NCBI RefSeq assembly: GCF_020745735.1
Contig: NC_083409.1
Span: 18,310,341 to 18,374,340 of the forward strand
Source: Hemiscyllium ocellatum
Taxonomy: Eukaryota
Direction of reading: 5' to 3'
Length of the DNA: 64,000 nt
Position 1 is the first letter of the stretch. Each line of letters starts with the position of its first letter. The position numbers and the translations under genes are program-made. Under the pieces are notes generated by a model. It was given only the letters and a program-made list of their open reading frames with translations. It did no database searches and was not told where the DNA came from. Positions 7,011 through 63,700 of the stretch are shown here, one piece after another.

Positions 7011-7016
7011 TGATGC

Positions 7017-11514: not shown

Positions 11515-11529
11515 GCCCTTCACAATTCC

Positions 11530-13610: not shown

Positions 13611-13644
13611 TGGTGATATATACATGGGACACTTTCCCATAGAA

Positions 13645-17520: not shown

Positions 17521-17559
17521 CTATAATTCCATATGTTTCCATGTTCATGAACAAACATA

Positions 17560-18840: not shown

Positions 18841-18844
18841 AACG

Positions 18845-21800: not shown

Positions 21801-22290
21801 CATTTGGTTCCTATCCCTCTGATACACTATTTTGAACCCTCCCCAAGAGTGTGATCAAACACATCCCACAGGACACTGGTTCCAGTCCTGCCCAGGTGTA
21901 GACGGCTCGATTTGTAATTGTCCTACCTCCCCAGGAACCAGTCCCAATGTCCCAAAAATCTGAACCCCTCCCTCCTGCACCATCTCTCAAGCCATGCATT
22001 CATCCTGCCTATACTTTCATTTCGACTCTGACTAGCACATGGCACTGGGAGCAATCCTGAGATTACTACCTCTGAGATCCTACATGGTTCCTAACTCCCT
22101 AAATTCTGCTTGTAGGGCCTCATTCCATTTATTACCGATATCATCCGTGTCTGCATGAACCGTCACAGCTAGCTGTTCACCTCCCCCTTCAGAATGTCCT
22201 GCAGCCGATCTGAGACATCCCTGACCCGTACAACTGGGAGGCAACATGCTATTCGTGAGTCTTGTTTTTGACCACAGAACCGCCGATCTA
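18845..22290 (-). mobile_element. Near full-length degenerate CR1 LINE (ORF1 esterase, endonuclease, RT)
   Basis: VTVHADTDDIG (ORF1), WAELRNRKG..EDFNFPNIDWD (EN), DFSKVFDKVPHG..YINDLE..FADDAKIG (RT). Paralog at 58280-61720. Confidence 0.9.
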
Positions 22291-22917
22291 CTCCCCTTAC
22301 AAAGTCCAAACAAACCATATCTATGCCCCCCCCCCCCGATCAATCCATCCACTACATCCTCAAACAATTTCGGTCGATTTTTTAAGCATGATTTCCCTTT
22401 CGAAAATTCATGCTGACTCTGTCCAGTTCTGTCACTGTTTTCAAACTACTAAGCTATAAAATATTTTATAATGAACTTGAGCATTTTCTCCACTGCTGAT
22501 TTCTGGCTCAATGGTCTAAAATTTCTTATTTTCCCTCTCTCTCTCTCTCTTTTTCAATAGACTTGTTAAATTAACTCCCTCCACTCTGTAGGACCTATTC
22601 CACAGTCAACAAACAGATAACCATCAATGTTTCTAATATTTTACAACCACTTCCTGAAGCACTCCTGAAAATAGATTATTTGGCCCTGCTGATTTAAGAC
22701 ATTCTAATTTTCCCAGAACCATTTTCCTCCAACAACTGACTTCCTTCAGCTCCTTCCTTTGATAAAACCCCAAGTTCACCAACATGTCTGAGATTTATTT
22801 GAGAATTCATTTGTGCAGAAAGATCCAGAATATGTTTATCTGTCATCTCTTTGTTCCAACGATAACATTATAACACTTGTGTGGAACTTCCTTGAATGTC
22901 ATCTGGACGTCCATATA

Positions 22918-23671
22918 AGACATAAGACATAAGACATAGGAGTGGAAGTAAGGCCATTCGGCCCATCGAGTCCACTCCTCCATTCAGTCATGGATGATGG
23001 GCATTTCAACTCCACTTACCAGTGTTCTCCCCGTAGCCCTTAATTCCTCGAGACAACAAGAATCTATCAATCTCGGCTTTGAAGACATTTAGCATCCCGG
23101 CCTCCACTGCACTCCGTGGCAATGAATTCCACAGGCCCACCACCCTCTGGCTGAAGAAATGTCTCAGCATTTCTGTTCTGAATTGACCCCCTCTAATCCT
23201 AAGTCTGTGTCCACGGGTCCTAGTCTCCTCGGCTAATGGAAATAATTTCCTAGCGTCCACCCTTTCCAAGCCATGTATTATCTTGTACGTCTCTAGTAAG
23301 TCTCCCCTTAATCTTCTAAACTCCAATGAATACAATCCCAGGATCCTCAGCTGTTCCTCATATGTTAGACCTACCATTCCAGGGATCATCCGTGTGAATC
23401 TCCGCTGGACACGTTCCAGTGTCAGTATGTCCTTCCTGAGGTGTGGGGACCAAAGCTGGACACAGTACTCCCAATGGGGCCTAACCAGAGCTTTATAAAG
23501 TCTCAGTAGCACATCTCTGCTTTTATATTCCAACCCTCTTGAGATAAGTGACAACATTGCATTCGCTTTCTTAATCACGGACTCAACCTGCATGTTTACC
23601 TTTAGAGAATCCTCGACTAGCACTCCCAGATTCCTTTGTACTTTGGCTTTAATAATTTTCTCACCATTTAG
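22918..23671 (-). mobile_element. Young 5'-truncated CR1 insertion specific to copy A
   Basis: Stop-free RT C-terminal ORF within 23006-23698 and (cttatgt)n tail. Empty site ccatataaacaacac at about 62339-62353. Confidence 0.92.
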
Positions 23672-34024: not shown

Positions 34025-34329
34025 ATTAGATTAGATTAGATTACTTACAGCGTGGAAACAGGCCCTTCGGCCCAACAAGTCCACACCGACCTGCCGAAGC
34101 GCAACCCACCCATACCTCTACATTTACCCCTTACCTAACACTACAGGCAATTTAGCATGGCCAATTCACCTGACCTGCACATCTTTGGACTGTGGTAGGA
34201 ACCGGAGCTCCCGGAGGAAACCCACGCAGACACGGGGAGAACGTGCAAACTCCACACAGTCTGTCGCCTGAGTTGGGAATTGAACCTGGGTCTCAGGCGC
34301 TGTGAGGCAGCGGTGCTAACCACTGTGCC
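34025..34329 (-). mobile_element. HE1-type SINE, near full length with (ctaat)n tail
   Basis: Reverse complement of the ggcacagtggttagcac..gggccgaagggcctgtttccac..ctaatctaat consensus. Confidence 0.92.
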
Positions 34330-37750: not shown

Positions 37751-38789
37751 TGTAATTTTAAATTTCCTGTTGGTCTTTATTTTTTAATCTGTAAAATATT
37801 TCCGTCAAGGAGACAGAGAAGGCTCCAGCACAGGAAGAGGCTGTTCAGCCCGTCGTATCAGTGCTGGCTGTTTATTAACCTCATTCACAATGAACATCTC
37901 CATTCAATGTTTGTTGTCAGGAATTGATTGAATCTGTTTTTAGAGACAGGATGACTAACAAATGACTAACTAACATGAACTACTCCAAGAGAGTCAGCAT
38001 GGATTTATAAAGGTTCAGACATCTTTAACTAACCTGGTTACACTTTGTTAGGAGCACACTAGTGTGGGATATAAGGGAATGTCGATGGCTATTGTCTAAA
38101 GGGAATTCCACAAGACATTTAAAAAGAGACATGGAATCAGATGGAATTTGAGAAATGCATTTACCTTGGGTCAGGAATGGGTCTGGAGCTAGGAGACAGA
38201 GAGGAGGGATAATGTGCATGTCCTCCAATGAGCAAGATGTGAATAGTGGTGTCCCCAGGGATCTGTGCTGGGACGTCAGCTTCACACAATATTTCTCAAT
38301 GACTTGGATGAAGAAATAGAGAACCATATATCCAAGATTGTTGATCACTCTGAGTGAGGTGGTTTGGAGGGTGAGATAGGGAGGGTGGAAGGACAGGGAG
38401 AGGTTTGAGAACAAGGATGAGAACTTGCAAATCAAGACATTTCTGGACTGGGAGCCAATGTAGGTCAGTGAGCACAAGGGGAGGGAATGGGGGAATGGGG
38501 CTTGGTGGGAGTTCGGATACTCGCAGCAGAGTTTGGGATGAGCTGATGTTTACCGAAGGTGATGGCTGTGATGTGGGCCAGGACAACAGTGGAATGGTCA
38601 TGCTTGGAGTCCCTATCACATAGCTGAGATTTTCAGTGTCTGATCTTTGTGATGTGGAGGATGTGGGGCTCAGATCAGCCTCAAAGATGAATCTAAGGTC
38701 GTAAACAGTCTGGTTAAGCAGCAGACAGTTCTCAGGGAGAGGGATGCAGTTTGTATTGGGAGCTGAAGAGGATGGCTTTGATCTTCCCA

Positions 38790-39045
38790 ATGTGTTTCCC
38801 AGTGAGCCTGACTCCTCAGTCCTGACTGCTCTTAGCTGCTGTGATTGTCACTGATTAGACACTTATTATTAGAGATTCTGACCACAGCAGAAAGCCCCAG
38901 TGTAAAAAATAACTGCAAAGACTGTCAGATCACAAGGTTGAAACTTCACCAAGAGAGGAAGTGAAAGAAGGAGTTCAGAGCAGCTGGACCTTTGTTACTG
39001 AGAAAACTGTGAACCATCTGCATTCCCTGGAATCTGACGGCACAA
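38790..39045 (+). promoter_or_regulatory. Candidate B-cell enhancer upstream of cluster 2
   Basis: RUNX ACCACA 38881-38886, EICE GGAAGTGAAA 38957-38966, E-boxes CAGCTG 38981-38986 and CATCTG 39015-39020. Confidence 0.55.
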
Positions 39046-42000
39046 GAGGAGGCCATTCAGCCCATTGTGTCTGTGAGTGACCAAAGTAGTCCTACTGCTC
39101 CTCTCTCTCCCCATAATCCAGCAAACCTTTCCTTTCCAGCTCGATCTTAATGCTCTCTTGTCGACCTGGGTAGACAGCACAGGATTGCCCCTAATCTGCG
39201 TTCCAAATTGGCATCTCATTCATTCATTGGGAGACAAGCTGCCAGGGCTGGGAAATGGAGCTCAGGATCCTGAATATTCCCTCTCCCCTCCTGAGGGACC
39301 CTTCATTCGGTTTTGCATATTCATTCGTGGGAAGTGGGCTTCACCGGCTGGCCCAGCATTTTCTACCCTGTCCCTAGTTACCCTGGAGAAGGTGGTGGGA
39401 AGCTGCCTTCTTGAATCGCTATAGTCCACAAGCTGTAAGTTGACCCACAATGCTCTTCGGGAGGGAATGCCAGCATTTTAACCCAGCAAGGCTGAGGGAT
39501 TAGCAACATATTTCCAAGTCAGGATGCTAAGCTTTTCCGAGGGGAAATTGCAGCTCATAGTGTTCCCATGTGTCTGCAGCTCCTGGTCTTCGAAACAGAA
39601 GTGGATGTGGGTTTGGAAGGAAACCAAAAGAAATGCGGATGCTGTAAATCCGAGACAAAGATCTAAATTGCTGGAAAAGCTCGGCAGGTCTGGCAACATC
39701 TGTGAAGAGAGATGCACAGGTCAAGCACGAAACATTAACTCTGATTTCTCTCCCCAGATGCTGCCAGACTTGCTGAGCTTTTCCAGCGATTTCTATGTTT
39801 GTCCATGGGTTTGGAAGGTGCTATCTGAGGACCTTTGGTGAGTTTCTGCAGTGCATCTTATCGATAATACTCACTGCTGCTACTGAGCATCGGGAATGGT
39901 GAGAGTGGATGCTTTGAGAATGTGATGCCAATCAAGCAGGTTGCTTGGCTCTGGATGGTATCAAACTTTTCGATTGGATGAGAAAGACATAGACACGAAT
40001 AGATTAGAGGGATACGGGCCAAATGCAGGCAAATGAGACTCGTTCACTTCAGAAACCCTGGTCAGCATGGAGAAGATTGGCTTCAAGGCTTGTTTCTTCG
40101 CCGTATGACTCTGTGACACTATCAGTCTATGAATGTTGTTGGAGCTGCACCTGTCCAGGCAAGTGGGGAGTATTTGCTCACACTCCTGACTTGGTTGACA
40201 GGCTTTCGGGGAATCAGGAGGTGAGTTACTCAATACAGTATTTCTAGCCTCTAACCTGCTCTTGTAACCAATGAGCTTCTGTGGTGAGTCCAGTTGTGTT
40301 TCTGGTCAATGGCACCTCAAGAATGCTGATAGTGGGGATTCAGTGATGGTAATAGCATTGACTGTCAAGGGACGATGGTTAGGATGTCTCTTATTGCTGA
40401 TGGTCATTGGCTGGCATTTGCATGGCACCAATGGAAAATATCACTTCTCAGACAAAACCTGGATGTTGTCCAAATATTGTTGTATTTGAACATGGACTAT
40501 TTCAGTATCTGTGGAGTTGAGAATGGTGCTGAACATTGCCAAAGATTGCACAATCATCCCCATTTACGAGTTTGCATTGAGTTGCAATATTTGTTTGGAG
40601 TCTGTCCTATTTAGTACGGTGATAGTACCACACAACACAATGGAGGGGATTCTCAATGTGAAGGTCAGATTTTGTTTCCACAAGGACTGTGTGATGGTCA
40701 CTCTTATCAATACTGTCAAGGATAGATGCATCTACAGCCACAAGATTGGTGAGGATGGGGTCAAGCATCTTTTTCCATCTTTTTGGTTCCAGCTGCAGAG
40801 CCAGTCCCTCAGCTACATCCATGAGGAACCAACCAGATCGATCAGGAATGCTGCTGCCGAGCCACTCTCAGTGGTGGACATTGAAACCCCCCACCCAGAG
40901 TACACTCTCTGCTGTCATCACCCTCAGTGCTTCCTCCAAATGTTGTTCAACATCCAGGAGAGACTGATTCATCAGCCGAGGGAGCAAGATACCTTGTAAT
41001 CACCAGAAGGTTTCCTCGCCCATGTTTAACCTGGTGTCATGAGGTCCAGAGCCAACTTTGAGATTTTCCAGGGTAACTCCCTCCTGGCTGTAGACCACTG
41101 TGTCATCAGCTCTGCTGGGTCTGCCTTTCTGGTGGGACAGGACACATGCAGGGACAGTGATGGCGGTGTCTGGGGCATTGTCTGTAAGGTATGATTCTGT
41201 GAGTATGACTGTGTCAGGCTGTTGCTTGACTAGTCTGTAAGACAGCTCTCCTGAATTTGGCACTAGCTCCCAGATGTCAGGAAGGAGGATGGAGCAGGGT
41301 AGACAGGACTGTTTCTGTCATTGTCTTTTCAGAGTCTAGATCGGTGCCTGCGGTCTGTCCGGTCTCATTTCTTTGTTGAAATATTGTCATAATTGATACA
41401 ACTGAGAGCCCTGCTCGGCCATTTCAGAGGGCAGTTAAGGGTCAACCACATTGCTGGGGTACAGTTCCATGGACCCTGTAGTACATTCTGTCCTCTCCCA
41501 CTTCCCCATTCTTAATGTGGAAGGCTGGAGGTTGCTAGTAGGATATTCAACTGCAGGAGCTATCACAGCCCCCTGCACAATTCTGTCCCCACATTAAATC
41601 CACACAAATCTTGAAGTCACATAGCACCTGCAATGTTCAAAATGGTCCAAGATGGTTCACAAAGTTGCAGTAAGAGGAATGGGGGAGGGGGTGGAGGAAC
41701 ATAAGAACTAGGAGCAGGAGCAGGCAATTCAGCTCCACAATCCCACTCCACCATTTAATACAATCATGGCTGATCCCACCTCAGACTCAACTCCACTTTC
41801 CTGCCCACTCTCCATCATCCTTTAACCCATTACCCATTAAATATCTGTCCATCTCCTCCCTGATGTGAGACAGGGAAGGGACCACTCCATTCAGAAAAGA
41901 ATGACTATGGAAGGGGAAGGGATTGGAACATGTTGTGAATGGACAGGATGGGTCAGTGGGTCAGAGCCTGTCCTGTCCCTCCAACTCACGCTGATGGCCT

Positions 42001-43817: not shown

Positions 43818-43916
43818 AAGAGGAAGTGTGAGGGGCTGACGTGGCTCTCTCTGCCTGATGCCATTTACATACTGAGGAACACCCAGTCAGACTCTCACAG
43901 GCTGCAGCTTTATAAA
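43818..43916 (+). promoter_or_regulatory. V promoter of cluster 2: ETS/PU.1 site, TGACGTGG, variant octamer, TATA
   Basis: AAGAGGAAGTG 43818-43828, TGACGTGG 43837-43844, ATTTACAT 43863-43870 (7/8 octamer match), TATAAA 43911-43916. Confidence 0.85.
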
Positions 43917-43976
43917 GCAGAGACCAGTGAAGGGAGAGTTTATCAGGAACCAGGCACAGGGACAGGAGCACACACC

Positions 43977-44025
43977 ATGATTTCACACATCCAGCTGATC
44001 TGGCCCCTGGCATTCTGTATCGCAG
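43977..44025 (+). CDS. IGKV: Ig kappa leader exon, cluster 2
   Basis: MISHIQLIWPLAFCIA(G), GT at 44026, 186-bp intron ending AG at 44210-44211. Confidence 0.95.
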
Positions 44026-44211
44026 GTACAAATCTCTCTCCTTCCACCTTGAATCTTTAGCTGCTCTCCATTTCACTCCAATTCCACTGACTTGTGATTG
44101 AAGGGAAAATGCTGAAACCAGAGGAATGCTCAGTGTCTCCAACAATCTCTCATTTGACCGGCTCTTTCTGTGACAGTTCTGACTTCACTGTGTTTCTCTC
44201 TGACCCCTCAG

Positions 44212-44541
44212 GTATCAGTGGGGACATCATCATGAGCCAGTCTCCCCCGGTGCTGTCAGTGGGACTGGACCAGACCGCAACACTCACCTGTACGGCCAGT
44301 CAATCTGTTAGCAAGTGGGTTGACTGGTTCCAGCAGCGAGAAGGTCAGAAACCCTCTCTCCTGATCTATGATGCAACAACTCGATTCACAGGAGTCTCCG
44401 AGCGATTCACCGGCAGTCGATCAGGGACCAGTTACACCCTGACAATCAGCAACGTTCAGAATGAAGATGTCGCTGACTATTACTGTATGCAGCGTAACAG
44501 CTGGCCTTTCACGTTCGGTAAAGGAACCAAGCTCAGACTGA
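44212..44541 (+). CDS. IGKV: Pre-joined in-frame V-J kappa exon, cluster 2
   Basis: [110 protein letters not shown]. Both Cys and the Trp are intact, there is no RSS, and the donor is GTAAGT at 44542. Confidence 0.97.
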
Positions 44542-44752
44542 GTAAGTAAACCTCAATCTTCCTTTTTAACCCTGTCAATACTGAAACACACTTTCTAAGA
44601 TACAGTTACTGATTTGTTGAAGGTGTTAGTGGGGAGCTACAGTGAATGAAATGGTTGATTGAGGAGCACTGTATCTAACAGGGTGTTCAGTTCTATTTCT
44701 TTTGTTCCATTGCTCCCTTTAAAAAATAAGATATAAGGCAGTAAGTTTTAGA

Positions 44753-45053
44753 TTAGATTAGACTTACAGTGTGGAAACAGGCCCTTCGGCCCAACAAGTC
44801 CACACCGACCCGCCGAAGCGCAACCCACCCATACCCCTACATTTACCCCTTACCTAACACTACGGGCAATTTAGCTTGGCCAATTCCCCTGCACATCTTT
44901 GTGACTGTGGGAGGAAACCGGAGCACCCGGAGGAAACCCACGCAGACACGGGGAGAACGTGCAAACTCCACACAGTCAGTCGCCTGAGTCGGGAATTGAA
45001 CCCGGTCTACAGGCGCTGTGAGGCAGCAGTGCTAACCACTGTGCCACCGTGCC
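44753..45053 (-). mobile_element. HE1-type SINE, full length, specific to the cluster-2 intron
   Basis: Consensus-like from ggcacggtggcacagtgg to the tctaatct tail. Empty site at about 10082-10088. Confidence 0.92.
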
Positions 45054-47316
45054 GTGTGTGGAGGAGCTCTGTCCATTTGCAGCCTGTGGTCCCATTCCTG
45101 CAGCATGGAGTGAAATCAGTGAGTAGCCTCCTGCCAGTCTCAGTGTGACCGACACAGGCAGAGTTTGATGTGAGCTCTGGCTCCCTGTCCCAGTCTCTGA
45201 TCTCACTGACCTCAGCAGCAGCAGCAGCAGCAGCACAGTGAGACACCGAGCTCCCACCTCCCCCAGCTTTAACTCTGCTCAATCACACAATCACAGAACT
45301 GTTACAGTGCACAAGGAGGCCATTCTGTCCATCCTGCCTGGACCGGCTCTCTGAATGAGCAATTCACTGAGTGTCATTCTCCTGCCTTCTCCCTGTCATC
45401 CTGCACATTGTTCCTTTTTAAATGATAGTCTCATTCCCTTTGGAATGTTTTAATTGAAGCTGCCTCCACCACACTCTCAGGCAGTGCACTCCACACCTTA
45501 ACCACCCACTGGCTGAAAATGTTGTTTCCTATCTCACTTTTGTTACTTTTCCCAATTATTTTCACTCCATGGCCTATCCCTCTCAATTATTTCTCAATTG
45601 GGAACATTTTCTCCCTTTGTACCCTGTCCAGGCCCCTCCTGGTTTTAATTCCTCGAACAAACCTCCTCTCAGCCTTCTCCAAAGAAGACAGTCCCAAATT
45701 CTCCAATCTCTCTTCATAACTGATGTTCCTCATCCCTGAAATGATCTTTGGGAATTTCTTTTGCCATTTCTACAAAACGTCACCTCCTTCCTGAATTATT
45801 CACATTTTCTATGACCCTCAGGATTTTATAAACCTCTATAAGGTTTATAAGTCACTCCTCAGACTCTTACGCATCAGAGTAAAAAGTCTCAGCTTTTCCC
45901 GCCTCTTATAGTCATGGAGTTATACAGCGTGGAAACAGACCTTTCAGTCCAACTTGTCCATGATAACCAGATATCCTAAATAACCTCATCCCATTTGCCA
46001 GCATTTGGCTTACATCCCTCTAAACCCTTCCTATCCATGTTCCCATCCCAATGTCTTTTAAATGTTGTAATTTTATCCGCGTCCAACGCTTTCTCTGGCA
46101 GCTCGATCCAGACACGCACCACCCTCTGTGTGACAAGTTACCTCTCAGGTCCCTTTTGAATCTTTTGCCTCTCGCCTTAAACCAATGCCATCTTGTTTTG
46201 GACTCCCTTTCCCAAGGAAAAGACCTTGGATATGCAACTTGTCCATGTCCCTCATGGTTTTATACACATCTATAAGGCCATCCCTCAGCCTTGAATGCTG
46301 CGGGAAAAATAGCCCAGTTTCGTCAGCCTTTCCCTGTAGATCAAAACCTCAAATTCCTGGCCATGTCCTTGTAAATCTTTCCTGCAGCTTTTTAAGTTTA
46401 ACAACATCCTTCCTATCGCAGAATGATCAGAATTTTTCACATCATTCTCAAAGTGGCCTCACCAATCTCCTGTACAGCTGCACCATGATGTCCCAACTCC
46501 TGTACTCAATGCTGTGACTAATAAAGGCAAGCATACCCAACACCTTCTTCATCACCCTGTCTACCTGTGACCCCACTTTCAAGGAATAATCCACCTGCAT
46601 CTTCACCCCTAGGTCTCTTTGTTTAGCAACACTCCACAGGGCCCTCCCATTAACTGTATAAATCCTGCCCTGGTTTGCCTTTCCAAAATGCGTCATCTCG
46701 CATTTAACTAAACTGAATTCCATTTGCCACACCTCTGCCCATTGCCCCATCTGATCAAGGTCCCGCTGTACCTTGAGATGAATTACTTCACTATCCACTA
46801 TCCCGCCAATTTTGATGTCATCTACAAACTTACTGTAACTCCTATATTCACATCCAAATCATTTCTTTAAATGACAAAAGTAGTGAACCCAGCACCAATG
46901 CTTGTGGCACACAGCTATAGACAGATTTCCAGTCTGAAAAAAACCCTTTACCAACACTCTCTGTCTCCTATCTTCAATCCAATTTTTTTACCCCAATGGC
47001 TCACTCCCACTGGATTCCTTGTGGTCTAACCTTATGAACTAATCTATCATGTGGAACCTTGTCAAACACTTTGCTAAAGTCCATATAGACAATGTTTACT
47101 GCTCTGTCTTCATCAATCTTCTTTGTCACCTCCTCAATCAAATTCAGGAGACATGATTTTCTATGCATAAAACCACATTGATTATCCAAAGAATGTAAAT
47201 CCTAACCCACAGAATCCACTCCAACATCTTACCCAGCACTGACATCAGGCTCACTTGTCTATAGTTCCCTGGCTTTTCCTTACAGTCTTTCTCAAATAAT
47301 GGCATAACATTATTCC

Positions 47317-47585
47317 CGCCTTAGGCAACTGACTGTGTGGAGTTTGCACATTCTCCCCATGTCTGCGTGGGGTTCCTCCGGGTGCTCCGGTTTCCTCCCA
47401 CAGTCGTAATGTGCAGGTTAGGTGAATTGGCCACGCTAAATTGCCTGTAGTGTTAGGTGCAGGGTAAGTGTAGGGGAATGGGTCTGGGTGGTGCGCTTCG
47501 GCGGGTCAGTGTGGACTTGTTGGGCCGAAGGGCCTGTTTCCACACTGTAAGTAATCTAATCTAATCTAATCTAATCTAATCTAAT
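47317..47585 (+). mobile_element. 5'-truncated HE1-type SINE specific to cluster 2
   Basis: V-SINE core and (ctaat)n tail. Absent at about 7838 in cluster 1. Confidence 0.88.
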
Positions 47586-50559
47586 TAGCCAACCTCTCTG
47601 GTTCTCTAGCCCCTTACCCATGGTTGTCAGTAATACACATATGTCAGCAAGGGGCCCAGCAATCTCTTCCTTAGTTTCCCACAATGTTCTGAGATGCACA
47701 TGATCAGGTCCTAGGGTTTATCTACCTTTATGTCTTTTAAGATCTTTTGCGTCTCCTCATTTGTGTGTGGTCTCTTTTCAAGTCATCACTATTTTTACAA
47801 ATTCCCTAGCTTTCTCCATAACAAATAATGAACTGAAATATTTGTTTGGGATCTCACCCATCCCTTGTGTCTTACCCAAATATAGCACTCACATTTATCT
47901 GAATTAAACTCCATCTGCCATTCCTCAGCCCACTGGCCCAGTTGGTCAAGATTCCATTGTATTCTTAGACAGCCTTCTTCGCTGCCACTAATTAGATTAG
48001 ATTCTCTACAGTGAGGAAACAGGCCCTTCGGCCCAACAAGTCCACACCGATCCTCCGAAGAGTAACCCACCCGGAACCATTTCCCTCTCTGTAATGCATC
48101 TAACACTATGGTCAATTTAGCATGGACAATTCACCTGACCTGCACATCTTTGGACCATGGAGGAAACCAGAGCACCCGAGGAAACCCACGCAGACATAGG
48201 GAGAATGTGCAAACTCCACTCACCCAAGGCTGGAATCGAACCTGGGACCCTGGTACTATGAGGCTGCAGTGCTAACCACTGAGCCACCGTGGTGCACCAC
48301 CGGAGCCACCACTGAGTCACTGATGCCTCCTGAAAATTCACCTGAACACACTCTCGCAAGTCTAGCCTCTCTCTGCCAATTACACAGCTGCTACCCCAAA
48401 CTATATTCAGAAACTAAAGACTCCCATTCTCATCATGATTCTGAACTGAATCTTGGGTGGAGAGTGCGATGCACTCAGGGGACTTTTGGACTGTCTGCTG
48501 CTCCCCCATTCCCTCTCTCCCTGCATACTCTGAAGCTGCAGAGTGACCACATCTAGAAACGTGTTCTCCACGGAGCTCTCAGCCTCACGACATTTCTCAC
48601 TGACACCAGCTGCTGCTCAAGCTCCGAAACCTGGAGCTCCAACTGCTATCACTGACCTCACTTCCTGTACTCATGGTATTCCAGGAACTTGGAAACATTC
48701 TGAAATTCCCACATGGATGCACACTCTTTCCACTCTTGGATTATCTCTTTGCAGAGTTCTGATGACAAACAGCTACAGCAGGGCTCACAGTCCAGTGGGT
48801 TCATGTTCTAGGGTTTGGGGAAACTCTCCAGATGACTTTAAGAAATAGGAGCAGAAATCAGCCAGCATTGAATCTGCTCTGCCATTTGACCTTGGCAGAT
48901 ATGCTTCTCACCCCATTCTCCTGCCTACTCCACAGGAACTTTCCATCCCCTTAACAATCATGAACCTATCTATCTCTGTCTTAAATACACTCAGTGACTT
49001 GGCCTCCCCTGCCCTCTGTAACAATGAGTTCCACAGATTCACCACCTTCTGGCTGAAGAAATTCCTCCTCATCTCAGCTCGAAAGGGTCGGCCTTCATTC
49101 TGAGGCTGTGCCTTGGTTACCGAGTCTCTCCTGTTTTTGGAAACATTTTCTCTGTATCCACTCTATCCAGCCTATCTATTCTGCAAATTTTAATAAGGTC
49201 CCTCCTCATCCTTCTAAACTCCATTGAGTACAGACCCAGAATCCTCAACCATGCCTCATATGACAAGCCTTTCATCCCCAGGATCATTCTTGTAAACCCC
49301 TCCAATGCCAACACATTGTTTCTTAGAATATGGGTCCCAAATCTGCTCAAAATATTCCAAATTCAGTCTGACCAGAGCCTTACACAGCTCAGCAGTACAT
49401 CTCTGCTCTTGTATTCTGGCCCTATTGAAATGATTGTGAACATTTCATTTGCCTTCCCAACACAAACTGGACCTGCCTGTTAACCTGAAGAGAAACCTGA
49501 ATGAGGTTTGTACTTTAGATCTCCAAAGGCTTTCCTTATTTAGAAAATACCTCCACACCCTGACTCCATTGATTCCTGAAAGATCATCACCAATGTCCCC
49601 ATCACCTCCTCAGTGCTCCTTCAGAACACATGGGTGTAGTTCATCCAGTCTGGGTGAGTCCATCCACATTCAGACCTTTCAGCCTCCCAGTACCTCCTCC
49701 TTAGTGATGGCCACTACACTCACCTCGCCCCCTGACATTCTTGAAGTACTAGGACATTGCTGGTGTTTTCCATTGTGCAGACTGATGTAATGTATTCAAT
49801 TCCTCGCGTTTTCTTCATTTTCCTATTATTCTTTTTCCAATGTCTATTTCCGCATCCCTCTTCCTTTTTATATATCTGATGAAACTCTTGCAATCTTCTT
49901 TTATATTACTGGCTCGCTTTCCCCCCATTTCACCTTCTGTCCCCTGAATGTTTTTTTAGTTATCCTCTACAGGTTTTTAAAGACTTCCTAATCCTCTGGC
50001 TTCCCACTATTGTCCACCACATTGTATGCCTTTTCCTTTTGCTTTTATGCTGTCCTTGATCTCCCTCATCAGCCATGGTTACATTGTCCTCCGCTTCATC
50101 TGTTTCGTCTTTTTCAGGAGGAATTCCTACTCTGCTTCCTCAATTACCCCCAGAAACTCTGCTGTTTGCTGCCCCACCATCTTATCTGCTCGGCTCCCCT
50201 TCCAACCAACTCTGGTCAACTCCTTCCTCATGTCTTTGTCGTCCCTTTACTCAATTGAAATCCTGTTCCATCTGATTTCAGCTTCTCCCTCTCAAACTAC
50301 AGGGGGAATTCTATCGTATTATGGTCACTTATCCGGAGGATACTTTCATTTCAGCTCACTAACCAAGTTTGCCTCATTACACATCACTGAATCCAGAACT
50401 GCCTGTTCCAAATGATCAAGCACAAGCTGTTTCAAAAATCATCTCATAGACATTCCATGAAATCCTTTTGTTGAGATGCGCTACCCAGTCCATCTATCCA
50501 TGAAGTTCTGCCATAACATTTTGTATTTGGCTTTTTTGTTCTCCAGTTCCAAGCTCCAG

Positions 50560-50857
50560 CTCAGCAATGTCCCCATAACTTGTCCTACCTGCCTATCTTC
50601 TTTCCACCTATCCACTCCACCCTCCCACCCCCTATTGTACTTAACTATTGTACTCTATGCTACTTTGTCCGCAGCCCCACCCTCCTCTCACTTTTCTCTC
50701 CAACCTTCAGGCTGTCTGCCTCTATTCCTGATGAAGGGCTTTTACCCGAAACGTTGATTTTACTACTCGTCGGATGCTACCTGAACTGCTGTACTTTTCC
50801 AGCACCACTCTAATCTAGAATCTGGTTTCCAGCATCTGCAGTCATTGTTTTTACCCT
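50560..50857 (+). mobile_element. Penelope-like 3' fragment with hammerhead motif (50724-50759)
   Basis: attc-CTGATGA-agggc-tttt-accc-GAAAC-GTT-gatt. Absent from cluster 1 at about 3765. Confidence 0.75.
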
Positions 50858-51747
50858 TTTCTGTCTCCTGATTGATTTCTTCCCCACACCCTGGCTACTG
50901 CTTGGAGACCTGAACATAACTTGCATCAGATTCTTTATTTCTTGGGTTCCTCAACTCGCCCACACAGATTCTACACCTTCTGACTGTATCACTTCTTGCT
51001 ATTGATTTAAAGAAATTCTTACTAACAACACAACTCTGCCCTGTCTGCCCATCTGCCTGTCCTTTTTATAGGACATGGATCCTTGGATATTTAGTTCCCA
51101 GCCCGGATCCTTACAGCCATGTCCCTCTGTGATACCCACAACATTGTACCTGCCAGTTTCAATCTGCACTACAAGCTTCCATTGTGTATATTGTGGCATT
51201 ATAGTACAACACCCTCAGTCCCGCATTGACTGCCCACCTTCCCATCATTGTCGTCTTATCTGCGTGCTTTACATTCGATAACCTGATCCTTCCACACTCT
51301 CTGTCCTTTTACATCTTCTAGAATCTTGAATAAACTCTCCTGAGCCCTCCTCCACTTTACTTGTTTAAATTCCTTGGAATCTCAATTTACCTCAATTTTG
51401 TGGCATCATTTTTCTCCCTTACTCAGAATGCTTCGTGCATTTAGATCCAAAGTCTTAAGTTTGATACTATTATCGATTTCCCTGCATTTTTCTGATCCCT
51501 TTGATATTCAAACTCCAGTCCTTTCCTTTTATATTCTGTGTAACAATCACTCCCATCACTAACTACAATCCTACCTTCTCCTTCCCTTCCGTTTACTCAA
51601 TTTCCATCCAACTGAACCAATTACGTTTCTCTTAGGTTGATTCAGACAATATTTATCCTTGAACCAAAATCATGAAGAATGCTCTTTGATCTCATTGCTT
51701 CCAGTGGGATCTTGCTGTGTAGAAATTGGCAGCCCCTTTCCTTGAAA

Positions 51748-51760
51748 NNNNNNNNNNNNN
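51748..51760. other. Assembly gap (13 N)
   Basis: Read directly. Confidence 1.
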
Positions 51761-54700
51761 TAAATATGGGCCTCCTAATTACTGGAACTTCCTATAGCAG
51801 ATGGTCCGATGGTTGAGTTTTTGAAGAAGAAGCAAGAAGATAGTTAAGATAGAGTAGTTACAACTCTGTCTACATGGAGTTAATCAACAAGGTTTCCCTA
51901 TGGTAGACTGATCAGTAAGATTATATCACATAGGAGAACAGGGACAGCTCACCAATAGGATATGAAATTGTACTGATGACTGAGGAGGCTGAGGCTGGTG
52001 AGAGAAGAGTTGTTCTTCAGACTGGAGGCCAGTGACCAACTGTCTGTCACAAGAATCGATCATGGATCCACTGTTGTTCATATTTTATGTGAACAATTTG
52101 GATGAGAAAATAGCAGGAATGGTCAGTAAGTTTGTGGCTGATGTTAAAATTGTTGGCATAGTGGACAGGGAAGAAGGTTATCCAAGAGTGCAATGTCATC
52201 TTGATCAACTGGGCCAGTGGGTCAACAAATCCAGATGGAAATTTTGATAAATGGAAGGAGTTGCATTTTGGGAAGACAATCAGGGCAGAAATTACACAAT
52301 TAATGGTAGAGCCATGGGGAGTGTTGTTGAACAGAGAGTCTGAGGGTACAGGTACATAGTTCCTTGGAAGTGGGGTCACAGGTAGACAGGGTGGTGAAGA
52401 AGGGATTTGGCACGCCATCTTCACTGGTCAAAGCAGGGAGTATAGGAGCTGGGACATCATGTTACAGCTGTACAAGGCATTGGGAAGGCCACATTTGGAC
52501 ACAGTACATTTCTGCTCACCCTGCTATAGGAAGGAAGTTATGACAGTGGTTTGAATAAAAGAAAGATTAACAGGATGTTATCAAGATTGGAGGATTTGAA
52601 TTACAAGATGAGGATGAATAGGCCAAGATGTTTTTCCAGGGAATGCAGGAGATTGAGGGGTGACCTTATAGAGGTTGTGGAATTCGGAGGGTCATAGATA
52701 AGGTGAATAGTCAAAGTCTTTTCCCCAGGGTAGGAGAGTCCAGTACTAGAAGGAGTAGGTTTAAGTTGAGAGGGGAAAGAATTAGTAGGAAACTGAGGGG
52801 CAACATTTTCACACAGAGGTTAGTGTGTATGTGTAATGAGCTGACAGAAGAATTCGTAGAGGTGAGTACAATTACTACATTTCAAGGACATTTTTACAGG
52901 AACATGGATAGGAAAGATTAGAGAGAATTGGGCCAAACACATGCAAATGGGACTAGTTCAGTTTTGGATACTTGGTCGGCATGGATGAGTTGAGCTGAAC
53001 GGCCTGGCCTGATCCCATGCTGTAAACCTCTATGACTCTTTGGTGATATATACATGGGACACTTTCCATAGAACCAGTAAACATGGACCTCTTTCCACTG
53101 GAACCTCCAATAGACACCAATAAACAGGGACCTCCTTCCCACTGGATGCTCCAGAAGAGACTAGTAAACATGGTCCTCCTTCCCTCAGGACTGGCCAGCA
53201 CCTGAGCTACAACTCCGACATCCTCTCCATCATGTAGGTCTCTTATTTCAATCTCAACAACATTGTCTCTGCGTTACTTCGGCCCCTTGACCACAGAAAC
53301 CCTAATTCCTGCTCGTCCTGCCTCCTAAATCTATGATTCCAATGTCCTGTCCCAGCTTCCTAAAGCCATATTCCATAAACTCCAACTTGTCTGATATGGA
53401 GTGGGCCCTTCCCTGTCTTATCCATCTGTCATTCCAGAATGACCCCTGACCTCACTGCTAGCCAATTGCCTCCATGGCCTCCCCCTCCCTCCATCTGTGT
53501 CCTGCTGCAGACTCACATTCCCTCCCTCCCCCTTTCATCTTCTGTCTCTGGTCTCCTGCCCATTGCTACTTGCTCCACCCACCATTGACAGCAGAGCATT
53601 CAGACCCCTACAGCATGCTCTCTGACCTCCTGCCCTTGATCCCTCCCCCTCTCAATGGTTGTGCTATTGAGTATACTGTTCAATCCCATCACTTTGGTTC
53701 ACTGTCCCTTGCCATTGATTTGCTGAATTCTTCCTCATCAGTAAATCTAGTCTGGCCTGTTCCTTGAGTTGGTTCAAGAGAGTTTCCCTTGAGAAAAACA
53801 CTCTTCTGTAAACTGGGTTGTCTGTTTCTCCCAGTCTTTGTGTAAAGGTGAGTCTAAGTGTGTGTAAGCTCTAAAACAGCACAGACAGAGGTCACTGGGC
53901 TGATTGTGACTGTTAGTCAAATGAGTCCAATGAGTCCCATTTCCCCAGCCCTTCCTGTAAAACTGCAATTATTTCCTTTCAGCTATTTCTCCAAATGCCC
54001 TTTTGAAAGTTGCTGTTGAATCCACTTCCACTCACCTTGCAGACAGTCACCATGAACTCGCTGGATAAAAAATGTTCCTATCTTCTCTCTTGTGCTTTAG
54101 ACTCTTTCTGAAATGTGTGCCCTCTGGTTACTGACCCTCCTGCCTGGAGAAACAATTTGTCCTGTATTTACTGCATCCAAACTCTCTAATTGTGAAATCC
54201 TCATTGAGTGAGACCTATTTCCAGCACAGGGGGAGAACATTCAGCCTGTCAGGTAAATGCTGTCATTTCATGGAGCAATCCATTCAGTCCCACCCCCTCC
54301 CTACTCGACCCCCAGGGCCTTGCAGGTTTATTTCCATCAAGAGCCCATCAATCTGCCATTGCAATCACTGAGTGTCTTCACCTGTCTCACCTGAATGGGC
54401 ACTAATTTCCAAGACTTTGCCAATTTCTGCTAAAATCAAAGTTCTTTCTGACATTCCATATCTCTTGCCCAACAGAATGTAAGATAATCTCAAAGGGAAG
54501 ACAGGATTTTGTCTCCACACGGACTGTGCGGTGGTCACTCTTACTGATGATCTGTCATGGACAGATACACCAACAGCAGGCAGGTTGGTGAGGGTGATAG
54601 TGAGTATGTTTTTCCCTCTTGTTGGTTGCCTCACCACCTGCCCCAGGTCCAGTCGAGCATCTGAATCAGGTGGACTTGACCAGCTTGCTCAGTAGTGATG

Positions 54701-57700
54701 CTTCTGAGCAGCTCTTGATGGTGGGCTTTGAAGTCCCTTACTCAGGGTATATCCTGCATCATTCCCTCCCTCAGTGCTCCCACCAAGTGTTGTTCAACAT
54801 GGAGGAGGACTGACTGCTCAGTTGAGGTTGGAGCGGAGGGCGGTGCTATGTGGTAATCAGCAGGAGGTTTCCTTCCCCATGTTTGACCTGCTGTCATGAG
54901 GCTTCATGGGTTCCATAGTTAATGGTGAGGACTCCAGGGCAACTCCTTTCTGACTGTACACACCACTGTGTTGCCTCCCCTGCTTGGTCTATCCTGCCAG
55001 TTATAACTGAATGAGGGATCAATTCTGTGCAGGTTTCACAGCTTGGAGACAGAGCTGCTGCTGGATTCTGTTTCTGATCTCCGAGTGCAGGCGTGTGTGT
55101 TTGTGAGAGAGAGTGACTGACACCTTTTCCAAAACTGTGCTGTTTCTGCAAAAAATAAATCCTAGAACCAGCCTCCTGTGCTGTCAGATTCCAGGGAGTG
55201 AAGATGGTTCACAGTTTTCTCCCGTCTCAGTAACAAACACCCAGCTGCTCCGAGCTCCTTCTTTCACTTCCTCTTTTTTGTGAAGTTTCAACCTTGCGAT
55301 CTGACAGTCTTTGCAGTTATTTTTTACACTGGGGCTTTCTGCTGTGGTCAGAATCTCTAATAATAAGTGTCCGATCAGTGACAATCACAGCAGCTAAGAG
55401 CAGTCAGGAACTGAGGAGCCAAGCTCATTGTGAAACATATTGGGAAGATCAAAGCCATCCTCTTCAGATCCTGGTATAAACTCCATCCCTCTCCCTGAGC
55501 ACTATCTGCTGCTCAACCAGACTCTTTACAAACTGGGTCTCATGTTTGAGAATGATCTAAGCCCCATATCTTTCATATCACAAAGATCAGCCACTGAAAA
55601 TCTCAGCCATGTTTATGGGGCTCCAAACATGACCATTCCAATGGCTGATGCACATCACAGCCACTGCCCTCCGTATCCTTCAGCTCATCCAAAATTCTGC
55701 AGCCCGTATCCAAACTTGCACCAAGTCCCGTTCCCACAACCCCCTGCACCCCGTGCCTATATTGGCTCCTGGTCGAGCAACACCTCGATTTTCAAATTCT
55801 CATCCTTGTTCTCAAATCCCTCTCTGCCCTCCACTCTCCCTATCTCTGTAACCTCCTCCAAGCTGCCTCACTCCGTGTGGTCAGCAATCTTGGATAATTG
55901 GCTCTCTATTCCTTCATCCAAGTCATTGAGAAATATTGTGAAATACTGAGGCCCTGCACAAATCCCTGGGGACACCACTATTCACATCTTGTTCATTAGA
56001 GAGCACGCACATTATCCCTCTTCTCTGTCTCCTACCTCCAAACTAATTCCTCACCAAAGACAAATACTTTTCTGTCACTGTCTTGATGATAGGAAGCAGA
56101 GGTAATATTGGAAGGATGCTTGTCAGACTGGAGGCCTGTGTTGAGTGGAGTGCCTCAGGGCTCAGTGCTGGCCCCATTACTGTTTGTTATCAATATTAAT
56201 GGTTTGGATGAGAACCTGTAAGGCATGATTAGTAAGTTTGATGTGCAGGTCAGGTGAATTGGACATGTTAAATTGGCCATAGTCTTAGGTACATTAGTCA
56301 GAGGGAAATGTCTCTAAATGGGTTACTCTTCAGAGGGTCAGTGTGGATTGGTTGGGCCGAAGACCTGTTTCCACACTGGAGGGAATCGAATCTCTAATCC
56401 TGTACAGGATGTCAGTGAGGTCGTACTTGGAATATTGTATTCAGTTTGGTCACCTTGTTATAGGAAGGATATTACTAAACCAGAAAGAGTACAGAAGAAA
56501 TTGGCAAGGATGTTGCCTGGACTCAACAATCTGAGTTATAGGGAGAGGTTAGGCAAGTTGGACTTTTTTCTTCGAGCGTAGGAGACTGGTGGGGGAACTT
56601 TTAGAAGTGTATAAGATCATGAGAGACATGGACAGGGTTGGGGAATCGAGGATGAGAGGGCATCAGTTTAGTGTTAGAGAGGAATGAATAAAAGGGAACC
56701 TGAGGGGCAACATTTTTACACAGAGGGTGGCACGCATGTGGAATGAGATGCCAGCTGAAGTGATTGAGGTGGATACATTAACAACATTTAAAAGACATTT
56801 GGACAAATACATAGATAGGAAAACATTTGAAGGATATGGGCCAAGTGCAGGGAAATGGGGTTAGCATGGATGGATATTTTGGTCAGCACGGTCCAGTTTG
56901 GCCAAAGGGCCTGTCTCTGTGCTGTAGGACTCGATCACTCTAGACTCTATAATTCCATATGTTTCCATGTTTCTGAACAGTCTCTCAAACATAGAAACAA
57001 AGGAACTAGGAGCAAGAGGAGGCCATTCAGCCCTTCAAGTTGGCTCTGCCATTCAATATGACCATGGCTAATCATCCAACTTAGTCCCCTGCTCCCATTT
57101 TTTCTCCATAAAATTTAACCCCTTTAGTTCTAAGAATACACTTATCCTCTCTTGAAAATATTGAATGTTTTGGGCTCAACTGCTTTCTGTGACAGACTAT
57201 CCCACTAGCTTCCCAGTCTCTGGCAAAAGAAATGTCTCCTCAGCTCAGTCTGAAATAACCTTTCCCTTTTCTTTAAACCATAATTCGTAGTTCTGGATTC
57301 CCCAGTCATCAGGAACATCCTCCCTGTGTTGTTCTAGTCTTGTCCTGTTCGGATTTTCAAGGTTACAATATGATTCCTTTCAATCTTCTAAGTGCCAATG
57401 AATATAATCCTAACTGATCCAGTTTCTCATCAGATCTAAGTGCTGTCCTCCCAGGAATCAGTCTGGTAAACCTTCACTGCTCTCCCTCCACAGCCAGAAC
57501 ATCCTTCCTCAATTAAGGAGCCTGAAACTACCCACGACAGAATCATGAAATCACACAGTACAGAGGAGGCCCTTCAGCCCATTAACTGTGTACCAGCCAA
57601 ACTACACTAAACCTACACCAGTCCCACTTTCCAACATGAGGCCCACAGCTTGAATGTTATGACATTTCAACTGCTCACCCAAGTACATTTTAAACTTTGT

Positions 57701-60700
57701 GAGGTTTCCCACCTCAACTCCCCTCTCAGGCTGTGCATTCCAGATGCACACCAACCTCTGGATGAAAAACATTTTCCTTAAAACATCTTGAAGCCTCCTA
57801 GCTTTCACATTGAATGTGAGTCAACTTGTTATTGACCCTCCCAAAAAGGAGAACAGCTGCTTTCTCTCCTCCCTGCCAATTCCCCTCATAACCTTATACA
57901 CCTCTATCAGGTCCCCCCTCCACCTTCTCTGCTCTATAGAAAACAACCCGAGCTGATCCAATTTCTCTTCATCACTGAGAGGTTCCATCCCACACAACAT
58001 CCTGGTGATTCCCCTCTGCACCCCATCCAGTGCAATCACATCCTTCCTACAGTGTGGTGACCTGAACTGCACATAGTACTCCAGCTGTGGCCTCACCAAT
58101 GTTCTGCTTAACTGCACCATCTCCTCCTGCTTTTATAACCGATACCTGACATGACAAAGGCAAGTGTCCCCTATGCCTTCATAACTGCTCTGTTAACCTG
58201 TCTTGCCATATTCAGGGATCAGTGGAGAAGCACCCCAAGATCACGCTGTTCCTTTGAGCTTCCTCAGTTCAAAGACCAAAGAGCAATGAAAATTACAGCA
58301 CAAGAACTGGCCCTTCGGCCCTACTAGACTGCACTGGTCCAAATCTTCCATCTAAACCTGTCATCAATTTTCCAAGGGTCTATCTCCCTTTGCTCCCTGC
58401 CCATCCATGTATCTATCTAGATATATCTTAAATGATGCTATTGTGCCTGCCTCTACCACCTCCACTGGCAACGTGTTCCAGGACCAATCACTCTCTGTGT
58501 GAAGAACTTTCCATACATATCTCCCTTAAATGTTTCCACTCTCACCCTGAACTCATGACCCCGAGTAATTGAGTCCCCCCACTCTGGGAAAAAGCTTGTT
58601 GCTATCCACCCTGTCTATACCTCTCATGATTTTGTAGACCCTAATCAGGTCCCCCGCAACGTTCGACTTTCTAATGAAAATAATCCTAATCTACTAAACC
58701 TCTCTTCATAGCTAGTGCCCTCCATACCAGGCAATCCTGGTGAACCTCCTCTGCACCCTCTCCAAAGCATCCACATCTTTCTGGTAATGTGGCAACCAGA
58801 ACTGTACGCAGTATTCCAAATGTGGCCAGGCCAAAGTCTGATATAATTCTAATATGACCTTCCAACTCTTGTGCTGAATACCACGTCTGGTGAAGGAAGG
58901 TATGCCATATGCCTTCCTGACCACTCTGTCGATCTGTGTTGTCACCTCCAGGGTACAATGGACCTGAACACCCAGGTCTCTCTGGCCATCAATTTTCCCA
59001 GGGTGTTCCATTCACCGTACAGTTTACTCCAGATTTGGATCTTCCAAATTTCTTCAGATCGCATTTGCCTGGTTTGAACTCCATCCGTCCGTTTCTCTGC
59101 CCAACTCTCCAATCTGTCTATATTCTGCTACATTCTCTGATGGTCCCTTTCAATATCTGCTACTCCACCAATCTTAGAGTCATCTGCAAACTTGCTAATC
59201 AATCCACCTATACCTTCCTCCAGATCATTTATGTATATCAAAAACAAGAGCGGTACCAGCACAGATTCCTGTTCTCCATTTTGAGAAACTCCTTCCATTA
59301 CTACCGTCTGTCTTCTGTTGCCCAGCCTGTTCTCTATCCATCTAGTGAGTACACTCTGGACCCTATGCGACTTAAATTTCTTTATCAGGCTGCCATGGGG
59401 AACTTTATCAAACGCATTCCTGAAATCCATGTGTATGACATCCACAGCCCTCCCTCATCAATCAACTTAATCACTTCTTCAAAAAATTCTATAAAGATGG
59501 TAAGACATGACATTCCCTGCACAAATTCATGCTGCCTATAACTAATAAGTCAATTTTCTTCCAAATATAAATAGATCTTATCCCTCAGTATCTTCTCCAG
59601 CAGCTTCCTTACCACTACATCAGGCGTGTCACTGGTTGATAGTTGCCTGGATTATCCTGGCTACCCTTCTTAAACATTAGCAATTCTCCAGTCCTCTGGG
59701 ACCTCATCCATGTTCAAAGTTGCTACAAAGATATTGATTAAGGCCCCAGCTATTTCCTCTCTTGCTTCCCTCAGTAACCTGGGATCAATCCCATCCCGAC
59801 CTGGGGCTTGTCCACCTGGATGCCTTTTAAAATACCCAACACTTCCTCCCTCCTTAAACCTACTTGACCCTGAATAAACAAACATCTATCCCCAACTTCA
59901 ACATCTGTCATTTCCCCCCTCCTTGGTGAATACCAACGTAAAGCACTCATTAAGAATCTCATCAATTTTCTCTGACTCCACACATAACTTTCCTCCTTTG
60001 TCCTTGAGTGGGCCAACCCTTTCTCTAGTCACCCTCTTGCTCCTTATATATGAATAAAAGGATTTGGGATTTTCCTTAATCCTATTTGTTAATGATATTT
60101 TGTGACCCCTTTTAGCCCTTTTAATTCCTCACTTCAGATTGGTCCTACTTTCACGATATTCTTCCAAAGCTTTGCCTGTTTTCAGCTACCTCGACCATAT
60201 GTATGCATCCTTTTTCCTCTTAGCTATGCTCACAATTTCATCTGTCATCCAGCGTTCCCTAATCCTGCCATTTCAATCCCTTATTTTCACAGGGACATGT
60301 CTGCCCTGACTCGAGTCAACCTCTCTTTAAAAGCCTCCCACATATCAAATATGGATTTCCCTTTAAACAGCTACTCCCAATCCACATTCCCCAGCTCCTG
60401 CCAAATTTTGCTATAGTTGGCCTTCCCCCAGTTTAGCCATCTTCCTTTCGGACCACTCTCGTCTTTGTCCAGGAGTATTCTAAATCTTATGGAATTGTGG
60501 TCACTGTTACCAAAATAATCCCCTAGTGAAATTTCAACCACCTGGCCGGGCTCATTCCCCAATACCTGGCCCCTTCCTGAGTTAGATTATTTCCACATTA
60601 CTCTGTAAAATCCTCCTGGATGCTCCTTACAAATTCTGCTCCATCTTAACTTCTAACATTGAGTGAATCACAGTCAATGTTGGGAAAATTAAAATCTTCC

Positions 60701-63700
60701 ATCACCACCACCTTGTTACTCCTACATCTTTCCATAATCTGTTTACATATTTGTACCTCTATCCCACATTCACTCTTAGAGCCTTGTAGGATAGCACCGA
60801 CATTGTTACTGCACCCTTCCTGTTTCTGAGCTCTGCCCATATTGCCCCACTGCTCGAGTCCTCCATAGTGCCCTCCTTCAGCACACCTGTGATAACCACT
60901 CTGACCAATAATGCAACTCCTCCATCCCTTTTACCTCCCTCTCAAACCCATCGGATACCTCTGTATCCTGGGATATTTAGTTGCCAATCTTGCCCTTCCC
61001 TCAACCACGTCTCAGTAATAGCAATAACATCATACTCCCAGATACTAATCCAAGCCCAAAATTCCTCTGCCTTACCTACTACACTTCTCACATTAAAACA
61101 ATACACCTCAGACCATCTGTCCCTTTGCTTTCATCATCTGCCCCCGACCTACTCTTAACCTTAGTCACGCTAACTTCAATATCTAGTTCCTGACAGGCTT
61201 TAGTTACTCCCTCCTTATTGTCCACTAACTTCCTCATTTGGTTCCCATCCCTCTGCTACACTATTTTGAACGTGATCAAACATATCCCACAGGACACTGG
61301 TTTCAGTCCTGCCCAGGTGTAGACCACTCGATTTGTAATTGTCCCACCTCCCCAGGAACCAGTCCCAATGTCCCAAAAATCTGAACCCCTCCCTCCTGCA
61401 CCATCTCTCAGGCCACGCATTCATCCTGCCTATACTTTCATTTCGACTCTGACTAGCACATGGCACTGGGAGCAATCCTGAGATTACTACCTCTGAGATC
61501 CTACATTTTAATATGGTTCCTAACTCCCTAAATTCTGCTTGTCGGACCTCATCCCATTTATTACCAATATCATCGGTGCCTACATGAACCGTCACAGTTA
61601 GCTGTTTACCTCCCCCTTCAGAATGTCCTGTAGCCGATCTGAGACATCCCTGAGCCGTACAGCTGGGAGGCAACATGCTATTCGTGAGTCTTGTCTTTGA
61701 CCACAGAACCGCCGATCTACTCCCTTTACAAAGTCCAAACAAACCGTGTCCATGGGCCCCCCTTATCAAATCCACTCACTACATCCTCAAACAATTCCAG
61801 TCGATTTTTTAAGCATGATTTCCCTTTCGAAAATTCATGCTTACTATCTCCAGTTCTGTCACTGTTTTCAAAGTGCTAAGCTATCAAATATTTTGTAATG
61901 AACTTGAGCATTTTCTCCACTGCTGATTTCTAGCTAATTGGTCTAAAATGTTTGATTTTCCCCCTCTCTCTCTCTCTCTCTTTCAATAATCGTGTTAAAT
62001 TAGCTCCCTCCACTCTGTTTGACCTATTCCACAGTCGACAAACAGATAACCATCAATGTTTCTAATATTTTACAACCACTTCCTGAAGCACTCCTGAAAA
62101 TAGATTATTTGGCCCTGCTGATTTAACACACTTTAATTTTCCCAGAACCATTTTCCTCAACAACTGATTTCCTTCAGCTCATTCCTCTGATAAAACCCCA
62201 AGTTCACCAACATGTCTGAGATTTATTTGAGAATTCATTTGTGCAGCAAGATCCAGAATATGTTTATCTGTCATCTCTTTGTTCCAACGATAACATTATA
62301 ACACTTATGTGAAACTTCCTTGAATGTCATCTGGACGTCCATATAAACAACACATTCCCTTATCTCCCACATTAGTGACCTCGTTAAAACATGTAACCAG
62401 GTTAGTTAAAAATGTCTGACCCTTTTTAAATCCATGCTGACTTACTCTGATCTGTTCATATTTGTCAGACATTCTGTCTCTAAACCAGATTCAATTACTT
62501 CCCAACAATAGACATTCAATGGAGATGTTCATTGTGAGTGAGGTTAGTAAACAGCTAGCACTGACATGACGGGCTGAACAGCCTCCTCCTAGAGTCACAG
62601 AGTCAAAGAGATATTCAGAATGGAAACAGACCCTTCGGTCCAACTTGTCCATGCTGACCAGACATCCCAAACCAATCTAGTCCCACTTGCCAACTCCTGG
62701 CCCAGATCCCTCCAAACCCTTCCAATTCATATACCCATTCAGATGCCTTTTAAATGTTGCAATTGTACCAGCCTCTACCACTTCCTCTGCTCTCACCACC
62801 TTGTGCATGAAAAAGTTGCTCCTCAAGTCTCTTTTATATCTTTCCCCTCTTACCCTAAACCTATGCCCTCTATTACTGGACTCCACCACCCCAGGGAAAA
62901 GACTTGGTCTCTTTGCCCTATCCATGCCCCTCATGATTTCATAAACCTCTGTAAGGTCACTCCTCAGCCTCCGACACTCCAGGGGAAATATCCCCAGCCT
63001 ATTTAACCTCTCCCTATAGCTTAAATCCTCCAACCCTGGTAACATCCTTTTATATCTTTTCCGAACCCTTCAAGTTTCACAACATCTTTCTGATAGGAAG
63101 GAGACCAGAATTGAATGCAATACTTCAAAAGTGGCCTAGGTGACCTCCCAATTCCTATACTCAATAATCTGACCATTAAAGGAAAGCATATCGAATGTCT
63201 TCTTCATTATCCTATCCAACTACTACTCTACTTTCAAGGAGCTATGAACATGCACTCTAAAGTCTCTTTGTTCAGCAACACTCCCGAGGACCTTACTATT
63301 AAGAGTATAAGTCCTGCTCAGATTTGCTTTCCCAAATGCAGCACCTTACATTTATCTAAATTAAACTCCATCTGCCATTCCTCAGCTCAATTGCCCATTG
63401 GATCAAGATCCTATTGTAATCTGACGTAACCTTCTTCACTGTCCACTTCACCTCCAATTTTCGTGTCATTTGCAAACTTACTAACTCTACCGCCTATGTT
63501 CATATCCAAATCATTTATGTAAATGACAAAAAGTAGTTGACCCAGCACCAATCCTTATGACACTCCACTGGCCACAGGCCTCCAATCTGAAAAACATCCC
63601 TCCACTACCACCCTCTGTATTCTACCTTTGAGCCAGTTCTGTATCCAAATGGCTAGTTCTCCTGTATTCCATGAGATCTAACCTTGCTAACCTGTCTCCC

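Follow-up and report, generated by a model that had tools for sequence, protein, structure and literature searches.

A probable germline-joined kappa light-chain gene in the shark Hemiscyllium ocellatum

In the genome of the orectolobiform shark Hemiscyllium ocellatum, the V and J segments of an immunoglobulin light-chain gene stand fused in one open exon, behind a leader that is still split by its intron. We believe this to be an inherited (‘germline-joined’) gene of the kappa, NS4 or type III class, formed by a deletional V–J join of the RAG type, and we put the probability of this reading at roughly 85%. The gene lies in a window of 64,000 nucleotides (NCBI RefSeq assembly GCF_020745735.1, contig NC_083409.1, positions 18,310,341 to 18,374,340), the whole of which was analyzed, and it was first remarked upon in a preliminary description made from the letters of the window. 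Two clusters are referred to below: ‘cluster 2’, which is the joined gene, and ‘cluster 1’, a split paralog on the minus strand that lies head-to-head with it. The coordinates of their parts are collected in Table 1.

Table 1. Positions of features in the window, counted from its first nucleotide.
Feature	Position	Strand	Remarks
Octamer-like promoter element	43863–43870	+	ATTTACAT; one mismatch to ATTTGCAT, read directly
PstI site	43902–43907		CTGCAG; precedes the TATA-like element of the joined gene
TATA-like element	43909–43917	+	TTTATAAAG; shortly 3' of the PstI site
Leader exon, joined gene	43977–44025	+	MISHIQLIWPLAFCIA and first base of Gly; ATG at 43977
Leader intron, joined gene	44026–44211	+	186 bp; GT..AG ends
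Fused V–J exon	44212–44541	+	Single open exon; encodes a V-set domain
CDR3	44487–44513	+	27 nt; MQRNSWPFT
V–J joint	44505–44513	+	Falls inside CCTTTCACG
J-derived part	44508–44541	+	TTCACGTTCGGTAAAGGAACCAAGCTCAGACTGA
J splice donor	44542–44547	+	GTAAGT; cluster 1 equivalent is GCAAGT
J–C intron, incomplete	44548–51747	+	Colinear with cluster 1 from 10297 down to 3057
Run of 13 N	51748–51760		Assembly break
Cluster 1 leader and V pseudogene	10844–11374	-	TGA stop; Cys23 to Trp
Cluster 1 V-RSS	10816–10843	-	TACAGTG, 12-bp spacer, ACAAAAACC; first C of the heptamer missing
Cluster 1 J-RSS	10333–10371	-	GGTTTTTAT, 23-bp spacer, CACTGTG
Cluster 1 J segment	10298–10332	-	GTCCACG...CTGA, then GC donor
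Cluster 1 C-kappa exon	1336–1630	-	Sole C exon in the window

Spliced by script, the leader and the fused exon of the joined gene encode a product that reads MISHIQLIWPLAFCIAG-ISG-DIIMSQ...YYC-MQRNSWPFT-FGKGTKLRL. Cys23, Trp41, the YYC motif and the FGxG motif (FGKGTKLRL) are all present in the translation of the V–J exon, and both canonical cysteines are kept. The in-frame fusion with its nine-residue CDR3, as the preliminary description gave it, was found again: the exon is open throughout and is followed directly by the splice donor. The translation matches the Pfam V-set domain at 4e-17, and the proteins most similar to it are kappa V regions of sharks, namely those of Chiloscyllium punctatum (83–84% identity; named ‘immunoglobulin kappa light chain-like’), followed by H. 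ocellatum itself (82%), a horn-shark chain labeled kappa (77%) and a nurse-shark chain (75%). V-set domain, split leader and octamer/TATA promoter together place the joined gene among shark kappa (NS4 or type III) V genes. The octamer variant of its promoter occurs also in L001, our name for a C. punctatum kappa cluster that is split (BEZZ01019071.1), and cluster 1 has the canonical form. Several related V genes (P0003, P0006 and P0007) also encode the CDR3 tryptophan (SWP) in the germ line; the CDR1 tryptophan was absent from all 30 other relatives compared. The frame of the V exon also extends, free of stops, 118 nt upstream into the leader intron, within an ORF that spans 44094–44549 of the plus strand. 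Two C. punctatum gene models (P0014 and P0015) begin at the ATG of this same intron ORF (MLKPEECSV...); such starts are probably artefacts of annotation.

Evidence for the origin of the joined gene comes from what it lacks. By self-BLAST, 10843–11560 of cluster 1 corresponds to 44509–43791 of the joined locus (92.8% identity), 10088–10329 corresponds to 44750–44510 (89.3%), and the homology runs on until 3057 meets 51747, so that the two flanks of the joint keep their colinearity over about 0.7 kb on the upstream side and about 7 kb on the downstream side. Absent from between them is exactly the segment that runs from heptamer to heptamer in cluster 1 (10333–10843; 511 bp). Both ends of the deletion fall within 0–3 nt of the RSS borders, a coincidence that a random deletion would achieve, by our rough estimate, with a probability of about 5e-5. 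The earlier claim that both RSS and the spacer are missing from between colinear flanks has thus held up, under self-BLAST as well as a minus-strand reading of cluster 1. A strict consensus RSS pattern matched nowhere in the window, and a looser scan of the window found just one clean RSS, the J-RSS of cluster 1, and none at cluster 2. A scan for back-to-back heptamers, the mark of a signal joint, likewise found none anywhere in the window, as had been claimed; this fits deletional joining, the outcome expected of V and J segments that point the same way. V and J are, in sum, contiguous in genomic DNA, with no RSS and with the leader intron kept.

That intron disposes of one candidate explanation: a retrocopy is ruled out by its retention, just as the preliminary description had argued. 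A second candidate, that we are looking at a rearranged copy or allele of cluster 1 itself, is ruled out by the non-coding DNA around the joint, which differs from that of cluster 1 by 7–12%; divergence of this extent makes the joined gene a separate, old locus.

The joint itself can be accounted for base by base. In L001, 24 nt separate the Cys codon from the heptamer, and the distance is the same in P0003, P0005, P0006 and P0017, four C. punctatum gene models whose reading frame continues through the RSS. The J flank that precedes TTCGG is 7 nt long (GTTCACG in L001). Segments with these family-typical ends would offer 31 template nucleotides; 27 are observed, and so four have been trimmed. 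The single lost base reported at first is correct in comparison with cluster 1 only, the V end of which has itself suffered a 3-bp deletion, and not in comparison with the family-typical ends. The joint can be drawn as CCTT/TCACG or as CCT/TTCACG. In either case the V end (..CCTT) and the J end (TTCACG) template every base, leaving neither N nor P nucleotides, and the earlier statement that N addition is not evident stands. The joint, then, shows trimming without addition. In the nurse shark, germline joints contain little N, and somatic cDNA shows stretches of likely N region (PMC2193156).

Cluster 1 was described at the outset as dead, and it is, in at least five ways. Its V segment has a TGA stop in FR2, where CGA has been changed, and Cys23 has become Trp. 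The heptamer of its V-RSS is damaged, by the same 3-bp deletion that shortens the V end, as a three-way alignment with L001 reveals. The J segment has a GC splice donor. And the C exon is broken: a 26-nt deletion takes out the residues ESNARFSC, the second Cys among them, and causes a frameshift.

By alignment, the nearest obtainable DNA relative of the joined gene is not this neighbor but the split cluster L001 of C. punctatum. The V exon of the joined gene is 92.4% identical to that of L001 and 87.3% to that of cluster 1, and the J segment is identical at 32 of 32 and 31 of 32 positions, respectively. That the nearest relative is split, and that the deletion ends at RSS borders, fits descent from a split cluster rather than from an ancient, originally unsplit gene. 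The leader regions are more alike still. The leader exon matches both relatives at 48 of 49 positions, and the leader intron is 99.5% identical to that of cluster 1 and 98.4% to that of L001. Leader intron and core promoter are, indeed, nearly invariant among the three (44026–44211 and 43830–43976 in the joined gene; 11325–11140 in cluster 1; 1877–2061 in L001), when in the same clusters the V exon is 87–92% identical and the start of the J–C intron 86–88%. Constraint could account for this, or gene conversion. A maximum-likelihood tree of 31 V domains placed the joined gene in no supported clade, and the joined genes in it do not group; lacking resolution, this tree neither dates nor polarizes the join. 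Exact look-up of three ORF versions of the V–J exon in a collection of 15 billion proteins found none of them present, and a homology search sized for full-length chains returned no match above 84% identity and no public model of the joined gene.

Germline-joined kappa genes of the RAG type were described in the nurse shark by Lee, Fitch, Flajnik and Hsu in 2000 (R4, R7, R18 and RE18, of the NS4 or type III kappa class; PMC2193156), as the preliminary description had stated. The resemblance to the gene described here is close. In both, the leader intron is 186 bp long, the V–J spacer of the split relatives measures about 500 bp, a PstI site lies between octamer and leader, the joint is trimmed with no evident N, and the joined genes are found among split and pseudogene relatives (PMC2193156). 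The species differs, however, and the best matches of our gene are hemiscylliid, at 83–84%. The kinds of evidence differ, too: germline origin, spread in the population and neonatal expression of the nurse-shark genes were established by Southern blot, PCR and cDNA (PMC2193156); ours is assembled sequence.

Joined kappa genes occur also in C. punctatum. One of them, L002 (BEZZ01000502.1, chiPu_0011747), was checked at the DNA level: its leader occupies 3001–3051, the fused V–J exon starts at 3232, and the C exon spans 7099–7425. In three gene models of assembly GCA_047496795.1 (P0013–P0015), V runs into J without residues derived from an RSS, in contrast to models of split genes (P0017 and P0032), which contain them. 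Like the gene of H. ocellatum, L002 and P0013–P0015 comprise a leader and a fused V–J exon, in which V and J adjoin without an RSS. They are 73–83% identical to it, however, and their CDR3s are different, as are their J variants (FGPG and FGSG); they are separate joins, and not its orthologues. Their C exons are present in the assemblies, unlike that of the gene here. Skates and further sharks likewise have germline-joined light-chain clusters (Anderson et al. 1995; PMC2192082). These share with our gene the cluster-type organization and the fusion of V and J in the inherited genome, but there whole isotypes are joined, and here one joined member belongs to a mostly split family. A literature search for published descriptions of light-chain loci in hemiscylliid sharks found none. 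Two further entries in the set of relatives, P0011 and P0035, are shark kappa light-chain fragments that NCBI lists as sequences of Salmonella enterica and Aeromonas veronii. Their contigs measure 299 and 507 bp, and shark DNA seems to have contaminated these bacterial assemblies.

How complete the joined gene is depends on a break in the assembly. The run of N falls about 1.4 kb short of the place where, judging from cluster 1, the joined gene should have its C exon, and searches of the window by pattern and by tblastn found no second C exon, only the broken one of cluster 1. The word ‘intact’, used of the whole gene at first, is correct for the V–J exon, which is open, and applies only to promoter, leader and V–J exon; the C exon lies past the break, outside what the window contains. 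After the N run, a block of 10.6 kb (51761–62349) repeats 12342–22922, the upstream region of cluster 1, in direct orientation and at 94.5% identity. This implies a third, cluster-1-like cluster on the minus strand, of which the block would be the upstream region and the body would be absent from the assembly. Cluster 2 seems to have lost its C exon to the break, and the whole of the third cluster, which would have stood tail to tail with cluster 2, may have been lost there too. A short tandem repeat occupies 12113–12357, just upstream of cluster 1, and the contig after the N run begins at the matching place; this repeat may be the cause of the break. Two other repeated elements were seen in the window. 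One, of about 0.9 kb (15749–16649, 38151–39049 and 55172–56073), is 82–83% conserved and lies 4.4–4.9 kb upstream of each cluster. The other, an interspersed repeat of about 300 bp, has some five copies (44748–45051, 34031–34329, 47312–47565, 47991–48291 and 6744–7016), the first of which sits in the J–C intron of the joined gene as an insertion that cluster 1 does not have.

The history that best accommodates these observations would begin with an ordinary split cluster: V, a 12-RSS, about 0.45 kb of intervening DNA, a 23-RSS and J. Deletional recombination of the V(D)J type, in the germ line, would have removed the segment from RSS to RSS as a circle, with about four bases trimmed from the coding ends and none added. 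The resulting V–J exon is in frame, and its octamer/TATA promoter, its split leader and the J splice donor are all still in place. Transcription would start from that promoter, and leader, V–J and C would be spliced together without any need for RAG, to yield a kappa chain whose CDR3 is fixed and could be varied by hypermutation alone. By analogy with the nurse shark, such a chain might be used mainly early in life.

Three alternatives need to be weighed against this history. The first is that joined and split versions of the locus segregate in the species, the assembly having captured one haplotype. Some variation between individuals was seen in related bands in the nurse shark, but most joined NS4 genes were present in all seven of the animals tested (PMC2193156), and we think a segregating allele very improbable. 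The second is that the germline allele is split, and that the assembler caught a rearrangement from a somatic B cell. The assembly does break 7 kb downstream of the joint, which might be held to favor this. The sequence around the joint, however, is continuous for 51.7 kb without a gap; a single V–J clone amounts to a tiny fraction of the cells of a tissue; and somatic light-chain joints in sharks usually contain the N bases (PMC2193156) that this one does not. We regard somatic capture as very improbable. The last and weakest, a deletion by other means than RAG (replication slippage or repair at microhomology) or an originally unsplit relic V gene, is scarcely credible, for although one or two T at the joint could pass as microhomology, both ends of the deletion coincide with heptamer borders, the 87–92% identity to split genes and the near-identical intron and promoter rule out an ancient relic, and Lee et al. 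came to the same conclusion for NS4 (PMC2193156). The germline-joined reading is favored, in short, by the distinct, old locus, the long gap-free stretch, the joint without N, and the joined kappa genes in assemblies of C. punctatum. Against it count the mismatch in the octamer, the missing C exon, and the searches of public collections, in which no identical protein or ORF turned up.

Inherited V–J fusions have been known in sharks since 2000, and the gene described here is one further example. Antibody genes joined in this way demonstrate past RAG activity in the shark germ line, and they provide receptors that need no rearrangement. One might go further, and imagine that the gene makes a functional light chain independently of RAG, its specificity fixed and its CDR1 and CDR3 containing unusual tryptophans, and that selection has kept it while its split neighbor decayed, the chain serving an innate-like role in embryos or neonates; we offer this tentatively, and consider it doubtful. 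An in-frame V–J copy, intact as such and situated beside a decayed split paralog, is nonetheless a specimen on which to ask whether selection keeps such genes.
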